This document shows positions 35,138-41,100 of a DNA stretch of 64,000 nucleotides, one piece after another. Source of the stretch: Haliotis cracherodii (taxonomy: Eukaryota); assembly GCF_022045235.1 (NCBI RefSeq), contig NW_027266297.1, positions 34,844,001 to 34,908,000 on the forward strand. The letters run 5' to 3'. The notes beneath the pieces are model-generated. The model was given only the letters and a program-made list of their open reading frames with translations, was not told the origin of the DNA and made no database searches. How positions within the stretch are numbered: position 1 is the first letter of the stretch; every line of letters begins with the position of its first letter. Made by a program: the position numbers and the translations under genes.

Positions 35138-38100
35138 GTACTCTCTCTGCCATGGTGTTAAGACGTTTATCACCATATATAAAATGTGTACTTTTTGTGC
35201 CCATTATTTGAATATGTTTTATCATTAATATTACCTTATTAATCATGTAAAACTGGATTTATGGACTGAGGCCATTGTTCTGGAATGTTGGAATTATAAC
35301 TGTTCAATTATTCATTAACAAAGACTTTGTCTCTGGGCTAAGATATCTTTGTAGAAATGGAAGAAGATAGTCAGGTGGTTAAAATGTTAGCTTATCAATC
35401 GAAAGATCCATGTGAAGCGGATGTTTAATGACCAAGATATACAGAGGTTGTATTGCATATGATATTGGGCTTGACTGCAACACAATTTATTCCTTCATTA
35501 ACCCCATTCACCAGCTCACTCACTCTTGTGACTGATGAAGATCCAGGTTAGAATAGGTCATCAGCAACCCATACTTGCCGTAAGAGGCGACTAACAGGCT
35601 CGCTGACTTGGTTGATGCCTGTCATCGTATCCCAATTGCGTGGATCAATGCTCATGATATCAGTCACTGGATTGCCTGGTCCAGACTTGATTATGTACAG
35701 ACCGCCGTCATATAGCTGAAATATTGCTGAGTGCGGCATTAAACAACAAACAAACACTCTCTAATGTATGTATTTGTTTTCCAGGGTTACAAAGTGTTCT
35801 ACACTTTACTACCACAGAAGCCAATCTTCTTTTGGGATGTGCAGGAAGTTACAAATGACAATAAACTGACTACCATCAGTGGACTAGAACCCAATAAAAC
35901 ATACACTTTAAGTGCTTTAGCTTTCTCTGGAATCGGCCAGGGACCCATGTCACACCCTATTCAAGTGTTGACAACACAAGGAGGTAAGAGTCGTCTCCCT
36001 TTGACCGCGCCCGTCAGGCATGTTTCGCTTATTTTCATTTGGATTTCAGGATGCTTAGACCATCAACATGACATACGTATGCTGATGTGACCTGCAACTC
36101 AGCAAGTTATATTTGTGCATTATAGTGATCCCTATTCCCTAGCATGAACTCAACAATCCCATGCATGTTAAAGGCCGAAAAAAGAAATCCATGGTTCTCA
36201 GGCGTCACCTGCAGCAGTAAAGCTACCCGCATGACAGCATTTTGTTCTGCTTGTCGATTAACATAAGGCAACATTCTAACACTTGGGTAGAACCTTTTTT
36301 CACACAGTGCCAAAAAGAGGCCGTGCCTGCACCAGTTTTATAAAAAAACAAACAATAGCCTGAGAACCGATTGTGTTTTTGTTTTCCCGCCTTCTATGTA
36401 CATATATAGTACAAATTACATTCTGAAATATATACGAGTTTGATGACAATGCGAAAATGCGTTTAAATTATATGCATGCTTTTATTTTGGTTACTTTTTC
36501 TGAAGCCTTTTGGGAGAGTTTGATTTGTTTCTGTGATATATACCACAATGCATTATGTAGTGGTTCTGCATGACATAGTTTCATGACAAGGTCATGGTTA
36601 GAGAAACCGGAATGTTTATATGGCGAGCGATTTGACCCCTGCCCTCAAGTTTAAGTTTTTGGCTGCCCCTTTCTAAACAAGCCCCTGCATATGCGCTGTT
36701 TCAGTTGGCATCCCGACATTTCTTTCAACTTTTCTCACTTTCTTTGTCCGACTTTTCCATTATTTGTCTGATATTATTAAACATTAAATTTGTTTGAATT
36801 ATGAATTGACAAGTTAACATATGATTTTAGATTTAATATTTATGACTTTCTGATTGTTTTGTTACATGACAAACTTTTTTAATTTTCATTCAGTAATTCT
36901 TTGGTGAGAAGACATTAATTTTGTATACACATTGATTCTATTCTCACATATTTCCAAGAGTCTCCATTTTATTTTTATCACACGGCCTTGTTTACTTTTC
37001 TTTCGTTCCCTTAATTTCTTTTCTGTGCGTTTCTGGCCCTTCCACGCAGTGGAATTTGCAAGCGAATAAATTGCCGAAAACATATATTAAGCGAGTGTGA
37101 AGGCCAAGTGTTGAATTGTTTGGTTGACTATTTCATGTCATTGCAGCGCCCATATTTGATGGTAAGTTCGGAGAAGACAAGAATGAGGTATTCTAACGTA
37201 CCTATGTAGGGAAACACTACCATGCGTCTTCTACAGTTTTTGAGATACTCTGTCCGACTTGGATTGCATGTCTGCGAATCTATCGAAGTATTTTTTCTTA
37301 TCGATGTGTTAGTTATCTATCAGATGCATCGAGTGACATCTCTAAGTCTTCGTCCCGAAGACCGCTTGATGTTTTCTCCCTTTTTTTACTCAATGTGACC
37401 TTTGACCTGTACAAGTGACCTTTGCGCCCGCCCACGTCCGCAGTGCGCTGGCTCGCATGCTGTATGCTCTTCTATGTATACTCTGGCTGTCTATATATAT
37501 ACATATATATATGTCCGTCAGTCCGTCAATATTTGCTATTTTTCATGTTAGCGCGATTGTGTGCTGCGTATATTTGTAGTCAATATGATGTTTGCGTTGA
37601 TTGTCAGTGTTAACAAGGTAGGGTTGCGCACTTTGCAATCGAATGACTTTAGGACCAATTTTCACCCAATTTCACTTTTTTCTCTCCTTTTTCACTGTGA
37701 CATTGCACCCGTATATGACTGGATATACCTCTGTAGTCAATGTTTTTAAAGTTTTTCTGCAATTGTTATTTTTGCTCTTTTTTCACATTTCCAGTAAGCT
37801 GTAGCAATTTGTAGTAATATTTCAAAGGAAAATGCTTCTGGCAGGTTAATATTGCTTGCTGTAGATTAAGACTAGGTAACAATATTTGCACCTTTCACAG
37901 CAAATTAACTGCTGAAGCAACTGCGCATCGTTGACATGACAAAGCTAACTGAGCGATATATTTATTAAAACATATGCATGTTATATTTTACCAGCAATAG
38001 CCGTCTCCTTACCTATCTGATTTTACTCCAGGAGTAAGCGCTGGCTGCAAGCGCGCATATATTTAGAAGAATCCTTTGCCTAACAATTGTCACAAGTCAT

Positions 38101-41100
38101 TATATGTGTACATTGTAGCCATTGTATCATCCTTCCTGCAACTAATAATCCAATTTAATATTTCTTTTCCTCCAACCTCTACAGCTGGGCTGCCAGGTGA
38201 GGGTTATACCCTTTCATTCACTTCAACAATCTCCCGCGATTGACTTATATATGTCTGCAAAAATTAAATAAAAAATTGAAACAAAATTCCACCACTGAAT
38301 GGATTTTTGCTAATTTTTACCTTCACCAGATCTGAAACTTCTGTATTTTGACAGTTGTCGCTGTCTCCTTTATTCAAATTTCAAATAATCTTTTGACACA
38401 AGTGGGATAACTCTATGACTGACAGACTTCTTGATTAAGTATCGCGGGAGACTGTTAATCATTCATTCCATATTTTTTTTCTTTTCAAGTTTGAAGAATT
38501 CCACACTGTCCTGTCACATGACACCCCAATCCAACTTATGCGTCATTTTAATCCCTTTCCACCCAAACACTGCGTGTTTTAGCATTCTGATATTGGTGGA
38601 TCGAGGTTAAAGCGAACATGGTGCGGGGACCTATTTCTGATCTGTCACTCTTCATGGCTAATGCGCATCCAAAGTAGCCAGAAACTGACTCACAGCTAGA
38701 CATTCACATGGAATGAAAACACAAATGTCAAATTTTCAAAGAAGGTCACACCACTGAATGTTGCTAGTCACAGATAGATATCACGAGAAAGGAATGGAGA
38801 CCAATCTGCATACAGCCTTTAGATATGAACACACTATTTGGGAATGCCTGCTCATCACACAACCAAACACACGTGTAGGACACGATACCTTAGATTATCT
38901 AATGCATGGCTGCCTAGACACACATGGGCCACAAAAGCTTTCAAGTTTGTAATTCTTTGAAGTAAATAAGTCAGCACGTTCATTTTATTTCAGAAACCGT
39001 TATGAATCAATGTACCTTGAGTATGACCTTGAGAATATGTTACAAAGGGAATATTTATTAAATAAGATCAGCATGATAGATATCTTACATATACATGCTT
39101 TGTCTGCTCTCAAGCATGAATCAACTTTCCTCAAAATGTATTTTCAAAATATTTTTGTGATTTATTCATTCTGAAAGAAATTTGTTCATAAAAAAATACA
39201 TCTTATTTATGCATGCTGACATTCCTAATAAAGTCTTGTCCTATTTCGAAAAAGCGAAGTTTTGATTTTAAGATTTATGACAACAAAGGCATGTTGTCAT
39301 GGAAATATACGAGATATGATTTTGCATGCAAAGGGGTTCTTTTCAGTTGAACATGAAATTTGATAAATAATAATTCCGTACATTTCATGGGCTTTTGTTT
39401 GGATAAGTTTGATATCATACACCATCTGATATTGTAACGTTCTTCTGTCTCTACTTACATAGATGTGGAACTTTAATCTGTGATGTGTGATATTTTTATT
39501 TTGACAGAAAATAAGGATTTATGTTCATTTGTGTTGTTTAGGATGAATGCCCAAAGATGTAGCACTGAAAATTCAAAATACAAGTTTTAGATAGGTCACT
39601 GACTGGAACATTACATACCAAATTGAAATGGTTATACCAGACATGAGTATATTCAATTGTCTCACACTTAATGGTAACTGTGGAAGAGACTTTGAAAATG
39701 CAACTTTTCCTGTGTTTATGCTATGAATTCAACAGAGCCATTGCGCACTCCCCATGCAACACCATGTGCATCAGTTGTACAACTGTGCGCGATGCCGACA
39801 TGCTTTCTGCTTCAATAGATCTGTGTGCACAAAGCGCATATGCAACCAACCATAGGTCGAAATTATGTTATGGGCATAATTTAGCAAACCTCCCAAAATA
39901 TTTCGGATATTTGCGCAAATAAAAGACAAAATTGCAATCATGCCGCAAAGCTGTTAACGATCGCAAAATTGTATTGTAGAATAATGATGCCAACCTTGTT
40001 TTGCAGATTTTAGCGCGTTTTGTCGTTTGCGTACATTATGTATGTTTGAATCTTTTATAGTGCCTTATCAACCTCTCAACCTTCATGCTGACCCCATTTC
40101 TGCGAATGAGATCGATGTTGTGTGGGATCCTCCCCAGGAAGCAGATTCCATCGACAGTTACGAACTTTATTACAATGACTCACATTTCCGCCAAAATGTC
40201 CGCTTGAGTATCAACCCGCCTGTCGCAAAATTCCGCCTGACAGACTTGACCCCAGACACTGTGTATCATATCCAAGTGTCCGCCAAGTCAAAAAGAGGCG
40301 AGGGACCCAAGACGCCCACGATACAAGCAAAGACGAAACAATTCAGTGAGTTTTTCCGCAGTGGTTGTAGTAACTGTTGCAGTATTGTTGATAAGTTTTT
40401 TGTGGCCCATATATAAGTATTGTCTGTGGCAGTGGTCCCATTGTAATCAGTTCTTTTTTCCAAGCCACTGTGTTAAGTTAACTGTTGTAGTGCAGTACTT
40501 TGCGAGATTTTTGTGTTTGATTTTATGATGAAAGAGCTCACGGGATCTTGGTCAAAGGTAAGTGAACAGAAGTAAATTATGCAATATTTGATTCAGGAAC
40601 TTGATTAAGATCATTTGATTTTCAAATCATAATGAACCTGATCTTGACATTTCTTCTTTTAAAATCTTCCAATATTAAGAAATAATGTTTTTCGTAATTG
40701 TCATAAGATATCAAGAAATTAAATTGCCGTTAGCAACAGATGACAACGTAATACAGGAACAGGTAATATTTATTATGAAGAAAAAATGTTTCTGTGCATA
40801 AAGTAAGACTAGTTTAAGGATTATAGTTTTTGGTAGCATCATTGGTTATATTATTATGTATCCTGATCCCTGAAATTCATTTGTTTGGTGTATATATTTA
40901 GAGTGTATATACTGTTTAGAAATGAGATCCATACCCACTCGATGTTGTTGTTGTGAACACTATACAGTGAGAATAGCTGTTGTAGATATTCAATGGATCA
41001 AAGCTCACATACCAAGTTTAGTCCAGATTGATTGTGATGTGTTATATATTAAGGGACTAGATTTAAGGTAAGTGAGATTAGCATAGAGAAAGGTCACGGA

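Follow-up and report, generated by a model that had tools for sequence, protein, structure and literature searches.

The receptor protein tyrosine phosphatases of the LAR type (LAR-RPTPs) stand at the centre of presynaptic organisation. Which postsynaptic partner they bind is decided, in vertebrates, by very short splice inserts. Does a molluscan gene of this family carry a splice code of its own, and what would control it? The question is raised by 64,000 nucleotides (nt) of the black abalone, Haliotis cracherodii (RefSeq assembly GCF_022045235.1, contig NW_027266297.1, positions 34,844,001–34,908,000 of the forward strand), referred to here as the window and numbered from its first letter unless contig positions are given. 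A preliminary description of this sequence had singled out one intron, between the exons for the second and third fibronectin type III domains (FN2 and FN3) of a LAR-type gene, as an alternative-splicing control hub. We find that the intron contains two frame-preserving cassette microexons of 15 and 12 nt (me15 and me12), which bears out the proposal of alternative splicing; the hub itself is wider than proposed, since the associated motif cluster extends beyond the intron, spanning 35984–44359.

Gene identity and placement of the intron

The host gene encodes a LAR-type (type IIa) receptor tyrosine phosphatase. The window exons were searched one by one and match Haliotis 'tyrosine-protein phosphatase Lar-like' at 90–100%; full-length comparisons used database proteins. 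Mapping of one Haliotis Lar-like protein onto the window placed 23 exons between 35027 and 63728; they cover the protein from FN2 to within the second phosphatase domain. The immunoglobulin (Ig) and FN1 exons are located on the same contig, 45–105 kb upstream, which confirms the gene class, and the black abalone has a single gene of this type.

The peptides of the exons that flank the FN2–FN3 junction are found unchanged in RefSeq Haliotis Lar-like proteins. On the upstream side, the exon for the second half of FN2 (FN2b) has a peptide that is identical in H. rufescens and H. cracherodii isoforms; its match to residues 460–529 of the Haliotis protein P0203 is 95.7% over a high-scoring segment that overruns the exon ends. 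On the downstream side, the peptide of the exon at 40061–40345 matched LAR-type phosphatases when used as a protein query, and it corresponds to the third fibronectin type III domain, with its best stretch at residues 497–590, 504–598 and 483–576 of full-length LAR proteins (in the LAR protein P0275, FN1 occupies residues 343–439 and FN2 residues 439–539). When the FN3 exon was the sole protein query, the matches were all single-exon open reading frames on genomic contigs; they confirmed the conserved exon boundary (VP.QP) and carry no junction information. The intron had been described as the longest between the mapped exons; this is so if only the exons beyond 35 kb are compared, but the unrestricted statement is ruled out by the upstream FN1–FN2 intron, which at ∼44 kb far exceeds it.

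Two cassette microexons at the domain boundary

Several orphan splice signals had been noted in the intron, and two of these belong to real microexons (Table 1). Both have the properties expected of cassette microexons, with a length of at most 27 nt that is a multiple of three, AG/GT flanks and a phase-1 reading frame without a stop codon. me15 (ttgcag/GTAAGT) combines a weak acceptor, with UGC at −5, a weak pyrimidine tract and an AG-free zone of ∼36 nt, with a strong donor. me12 (ctacag/GTGAGG) is preceded by a long CU-rich pyrimidine tract, an AG-free zone of ∼64 nt and a candidate branch point, CTAAT, ∼40 nt upstream; its nearest UGC is at −48.

Public sequencing runs were aligned over 35760–40400, and the contigs assembled from them drop minor forms. 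One of these runs (X1) is identical to the window, with zero differences, and behaves as RNA, as judged from a depth of 130–210 over exon and 5–14 over intron. A 328-nt contig from run X1 (depth 211.5) consists of 35954–35983, CTGGGCTGCC and 40059–40345, that is, exon, me12 and exon. In a second run (X24), from another abalone with two differences at exon positions, a contig joins 35983 directly to 40061. me12 is included in the former run and skipped in the latter, and it appears to be the default or major form in run X1, the one RNA run examined. A microRNA-seq run gave no reads on 35760–40400.

The included and skipped forms of me15 are both known from RefSeq isoform models. Among the H. 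rufescens isoforms, X1 carries APIFD only, X2 and X10 carry AGLP only, X4 carries neither, and X5, X7, X9 and X12 carry both. The H. cracherodii models carry AGLP, and H. asinina and H. rubra have APIFD together with VGPT, which replaces AGLP. Within the genus, me15 is constant, while me12 keeps its length and place and varies in sequence. With two in-frame microexons in a phase-1 intron, the mRNA can add 0, 4, 5 or 9 residues; combinatorial inclusion therefore changes the length of the chain exactly at the FN2–FN3 domain boundary.

A long-range RNA stem is predicted shortly after the me12 donor (Table 1). The 301-nt fold that contains it has a z score of −4.3, and the stem is present in both the minimum free energy and the centroid structures. 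Such a stem could draw distal elements nearer to the exon. A small hairpin is also predicted to span me12 together with its two splice sites.

Occurrence of the insert in other animals

The junction was compared across the isoform sets of ten further mollusc clusters. Four-residue inserts occur in Gigantopelta (AGPP) and Babylonia (AGYQ), and Pomacea has AGFQ or GFQ. The Biomphalaria insert is ANRGRNVHVLPTKFPQPIFD, whose end, ..QPIFD, carries the me15 motif, and the octopod insert is VPVNKPVIFD with or without QS, its ..KPVIFD in Octopus again resembling the me15 end. One chiton has GMSRLYP or DDSAKA, and a nemertean has an insert of 13 residues. No insert was present in any listed isoform of the bivalves Mercenaria (11), Mya (7) and Ruditapes (9), of Littorina (7) or of Physella (9), nor in the sampled chelicerate proteins. 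The inserts thus span gastropods, cephalopods and a chiton, which indicates an old molluscan splice hot-spot; the suggestion of a 'lineage-specific' splice code needs correcting to this extent, since the feature is not confined to abalone.

The accompanying statement that no FN2–FN3 equivalent is known in vertebrates agrees with what we find, as the sampled vertebrate proteins lack an insert there. The described vertebrate mini-exons are meA (Ig2), meB (Ig2–Ig3), meC (FN5) and meD (near D1); Ptprd/Ptprf have in addition a 12/15-bp microexon located between FN8 and the membrane (PMC8711739, PMC10883964). The FN2–FN3 site coincides with none of these positions, and a literature search found no paper on molluscan LAR splice variants.

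A second kind of variation affects the FN4 exon, which is skipped in the annotated Babylonia areolata isoform X5 and Littorina saxatilis isoform X4; none of the listed Haliotis isoforms is without FN4.

GCAUG motifs in the intron and across the gene

Rbfox proteins act on (U)GCAUG according to a position rule, in which motifs downstream of an exon enhance its inclusion and motifs upstream silence it. The intron contains eight sense copies of TGCATG, each where the preliminary description had placed it (Table 1). The expectation of about one copy given there was too low. Base composition alone gives ∼0.8, and dinucleotide-preserving shuffles give 2.7–2.8 because TpG and CpA are over-represented, an inflation of the background that had been anticipated; 7 of 1000, 5 of 1000 and 0 of 300 shuffles reached eight copies (p about 0.005). 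The GCATG core occurs 15 times on the sense strand against 5.9 expected (0 of 1000 shuffles), and the antisense CATGC occurs ten times against 6.5, which is not significant, so that the excess is strand-specific. Taken alone, the motif excess of this intron is suggestive, short of compelling.

The excess extends over the next two introns, with five TGCATG against 1.1 in 40346–42609 (one of them inside a short interspersed nuclear element, SINE) and three against 0.27 in 42919–44359. The three introns together (35984–44340) hold 16 sense copies where about 4.1–4.4 are expected (0 of 1000). The in-window part of the FN1–FN2 intron has 12 against 17.9, and the remaining introns are at or below expectation, except for one with hits in a SINE. 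When 154 kb of the gene were divided into 5-kb bins, the two bins over 35–45 kb of the window were the richest, with eight sense and three antisense copies each.

Relative to individual exons, GCATG is found at +35, +159, +180 and +246 of FN2b, at +105 and +294 (37455) of me15 and at −209 of me12. Sense (U)GCAUG within ∼300 nt, the distance relevant to the Rbfox rule, is present at me15, me12 and FN4. Most GCAUG motifs of the intron are more than 500 nt from either microexon.

A proposed model for hinge length and its control

The explanation that we favour, and regard as probable with some reserve, is that the two cassette microexons at the FN2–FN3 boundary tune a hinge, that intronic RNA elements govern their inclusion and that the three introns act as an Rbfox-responsive segment. 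In human RPTP-sigma, FN3 folds back on FN2 and the FN2–3 linker has been proposed to be a flexion point, and the meB insert extends the Ig2–Ig3 hinge and alters TrkC binding (PMC4239663). By analogy, the abalone inserts would lengthen the linker proposed as a flexion point in vertebrate RPTP-sigma, and may act as meB does, tuning the geometry of the ectodomain and hence ligand or cis/trans engagement.

Inclusion of the microexons is probably set by intronic RNA elements. The weak acceptor of me15 and its UGC at −5 resemble those of microexons that depend on Srrm234/eMIC, and its two downstream GCAUG motifs would be in the Rbfox enhancer position. me12, with strong core signals, may be included by default, as in the run examined. 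The GCAUG trios just upstream of FN4 and FN5 would be in the silencer position, and, given the excess over 35984–44359, the three introns may form a single Rbfox-responsive segment in which microexon use is coordinated with FN4 skipping. A second sense-strand GCATG cluster, in the intron upstream of the alternative FN1 cassette, speaks for the same model. Judged from the motif positions, Rbfox control of the microexons is plausible.

Several observations weigh against this model. TGCATG ranks only 22nd of 2106 hexamers by enrichment in the intron, and the motif was chosen after looking at the sequence. Only two of the eight copies are within 300 nt of a microexon. Three mini-exons of 42, 30 and 24 nt in the Ig region of the same gene have essentially no sense TGCATG within 1–2 kb, apart from one upstream of the 24-nt exon, and the introns at 40346–44359 show an equally strong excess although the Haliotis annotation has no alternative exon in that region. 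Genome searches for the Fox-1_C and SRRM_C families gave no match, a result of little weight for split genes, and me15 is absent from the H. cracherodii RNA contigs over 35760–40400, which drop minor forms.

Some of these points suit an account in which the microexons are real and Rbfox is uninvolved: core splice signals and Srrm234/eMIC, perhaps with PTB-type repression, would decide inclusion, and the TGCATG excess would be a by-product of local composition or serve another role. eMIC-dependent microexons are described as having UGC by the acceptor, an extended AG-free zone and a tract rich in C and U (PMC8797185); the UGC at −5 of me15 and, before me12, the candidate CTAAT branch point and CU-rich tract, together with long AG-free zones, would fit this description. 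The lack of TGCATG at the three other mini-exons points the same way, as do the 21 other hexamers enriched at least equally in the intron, for example ATGACA (nine against 2.05). A by-product of composition, however, accounts poorly for an excess that is strand-specific for GCATG and regional for TGCATG, with 16 copies against about four over three introns and 12 against 17.9 in the in-window FN1–FN2 intron, and for the placement of GCATG at canonical distances from me15, FN4 and FN5. We consider an Rbfox-independent mechanism possible, although not probable.

A more far-reaching version of the favoured model would hold that the two-microexon hinge length code has been kept in molluscs since before the gastropod–cephalopod split as an independently evolved counterpart of the meB code, and that in a transposon-free, GCAUG-dense segment of three introns Rbfox and Srrm234/eMIC link the choice of microexons with FN4 skipping, thereby determining the partners that the receptor engages at synapses. 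In this full form, we think it unlikely.

Composition of the intron

CpG has an observed/expected (o/e) ratio of 0.71 in the intron; the window as a whole has 0.44 and the in-window 35 kb of the upstream intron 0.34, in keeping with the CpG retention reported at the outset. In the intron at 42919–44359 the ratio is higher still (0.81). The report of no SINE, miniature inverted-repeat transposable element or minisatellite in the intron also holds. Neither tandem repeats nor members of the window's repeat families lie in it, and a search of the 1.18-Gb genome with the entire intron matched nothing but the intron itself, which is single-copy; an adjacent 4-kb control stretch has 5122 SINE candidates genome-wide. 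At ∼24 SINE copies per 64 kb, a gap of 4.1 kb arises by chance with a probability of ∼0.2, so that the SINE-free state is unremarkable on its own, and its reading as a sign of selection was rejected. An Rfam scan of the window and the intron gave no match, and constraint is accordingly not explained by a known intronic RNA gene.

Other words are enriched as well. GCGC occurs 17 times against 5.75 (0 of 1000 dinucleotide shuffles), compared with ∼2.5 per 5 kb in the rest of the gene, and the intron holds five of the nine copies of TGCGCA in 154 kb, several of which take the form TTGCGCA(C/A), similar to a C/EBP-type palindrome. Both words are strand-symmetric, which makes a DNA-level cause likely for them (e.g. 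methylation state or factor binding). CATGAC (seven against 1.46) and the ATGACA noted above are contained in a recurring CATGACA that partly overlaps GCATG.

These words and the retained CpG raise the alternative that the transposon-free stretch is mainly a DNA-level element to which the splicing features are incidental, for example an enhancer within the intron or a patch hypomethylated in the germline, with C/EBP-like TTGCGCAA-type sites. The GC content is only 37%, though, RNA depth is flat through the intron with no internal transcript start, and an element of this kind would leave the microexons and the strand-specific GCAUG unexplained. As the principal explanation, we regard it as very unlikely; as an additional property of the stretch, it is compatible with the model of microexon-tuned hinge length.

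Relation to known systems and significance

The closest parallel is vertebrate meB of PTPRF, PTPRD and PTPRS, which like me12 is a cassette of 12 nt and inserts four residues into a linker between domains in the same receptor family; the meB linker is a hinge, and its insert changes ligand binding (PMC8711739, PMC4239663). The abalone site differs in its linker (FN2–FN3), in its unrelated sequence and in having two adjacent microexons used in combination. meC, meD and the FN8–membrane exon are likewise microexons of 12–27 nt in the FN/stalk part of LAR-RPTPs, at positions other than the FN2–FN3 boundary. The abalone pair resembles the targets of the bilaterian neural microexon programme (Srrm234/eMIC; SRRM3/4 in vertebrates) in size class (3–27 nt), frame preservation, residence in a synaptic adhesion gene and, for me15, the UGC near the acceptor; me12 departs from these in its strong signals and in appearing as the default form in one RNA run. 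The sense GCAUG clusters at +105/+294 of me15 and −240/−102/−68 of FN4 are like those of Rbfox-regulated exons.

If a further linker code exists at a different hinge of this receptor, shared by molluscan classes but not by vertebrates, the regulatory principle would have arisen more than once. Such a code would also give access to synapse specification in animals with large nervous systems, for example octopus and Aplysia-type snails. The locus, which packs two microexons and a pair of cassette exons into 55 kb, also forms a compact lophotrochozoan test of the Rbfox GCAUG position rule. The isoforms are already present in automated RefSeq models, which limits the practical novelty: the exons themselves are known to databases, and what is new is the recognition of the site, its spread among molluscs and the motif architecture.

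Features of the locus

Table 1. Features of the FN2–FN5 region in the window (positions counted from the first letter of the window)
Feature	Position	Strand	Details
FN2 second-half exon (FN2b)	35785–35983	+	Phase-1 end (...TTQG + G); RNA contig stops exactly at 35983
FN2–FN3 intron, phase 1, 4077 nt	35984–40060	+	Single-copy; CpG o/e 0.71; sense-strand GCAUG-rich
TGCATG	36162–36167	+	179 nt into the intron; one of four GCATG <300 nt downstream of FN2b
TGCATG	36473–36478	+	
TGCATG	36567–36572	+	
me15, 15-nt cassette microexon	37147–37161	+	CGCCCATATTTGATG; adds APIFD; sequence, RefSeq isoforms
TGCATG	37265–37270	+	104 nt downstream of me15, the classic Rbfox enhancer position
TGCATG	37975–37980	+	210 nt upstream of me12
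me12, 12-nt cassette microexon	38185–38196	+	CTGGGCTGCCAG; adds AGLP; RNA contig, RefSeq isoforms
Predicted long-range RNA stem	38225–38456	+	Arms 38225–38240 and 38441–38456; 15/16 paired; CpG-rich; begins 29 nt past the me12 donor
TGCATG	38903–38908	+	707 nt downstream of me12
TGCATG	39210–39215	+	
TGCATG	39323–39328	+	
FN3 exon, 285 nt, phase 1 to 1	40061–40345	+	RNA contig, protein searches
Three TGCATG (42369, 42507, 42541)	42369–42546	+	GCATG cores at −240, −102 and −68 of FN4
FN4 exon, 309 nt, frame-preserving	42610–42918	+	Counterpart skipped in Babylonia X5 and Littorina X4
Two TGCATG (44191, 44332)	44191–44337	+	GCATG cores at −216, −168 and −27 of FN5

Other observations on the gene and the window

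The three alternative mini-exons of the Ig region are located at contig positions ∼34771371–34771413 (42 nt, NMTYQFRYIEFVQS), ∼34794989–34795018 (30 nt, GGNPWVVKYE, between Ig1 and Ig2) and ∼34812402–34812425 (24 nt, GGLVVLSE, in the Ig2–Ig3 linker, the meB position). The notion that TGCATG marks every microexon of the LAR gene was discarded because these three have no nearby motif. The FN1 exon is a cassette, absent from the H. rufescens isoforms X9, X10 and X12 and from the H. asinina isoforms X9 and X10. The intron upstream of it (contig 34832240–34834376, 2.1 kb) contains five TGCATG, with GCATG seven times on the sense and once on the antisense strand, none in a SINE context.

One SINE family starts with GATGCATGTCAT, so that every copy carries a TGCATG; copies of this type are at 9410, 31115, 41525, 58273 and 59148 of the window. 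Nine of the 78 sense TGCATG matches in 154 kb derive from this family, which is relevant to any count of the motif. The window from 1 to 35026, part of the FN1–FN2 intron, is CpG-poor and has many SINE copies of three families as well as minisatellites with units of 25 nt (10843–11291), 21 nt (13542–14063), 83 nt (21570–21875), 80 nt (23008–23338), 66 nt (25830–26058) and 25 nt (27270–27586). Further downstream, the FN6–FN7 intron contains a 30-nt minisatellite of ∼24 copies (45227–45957), and a run of 128 N (46148–46275) lies just before the FN7 exon.

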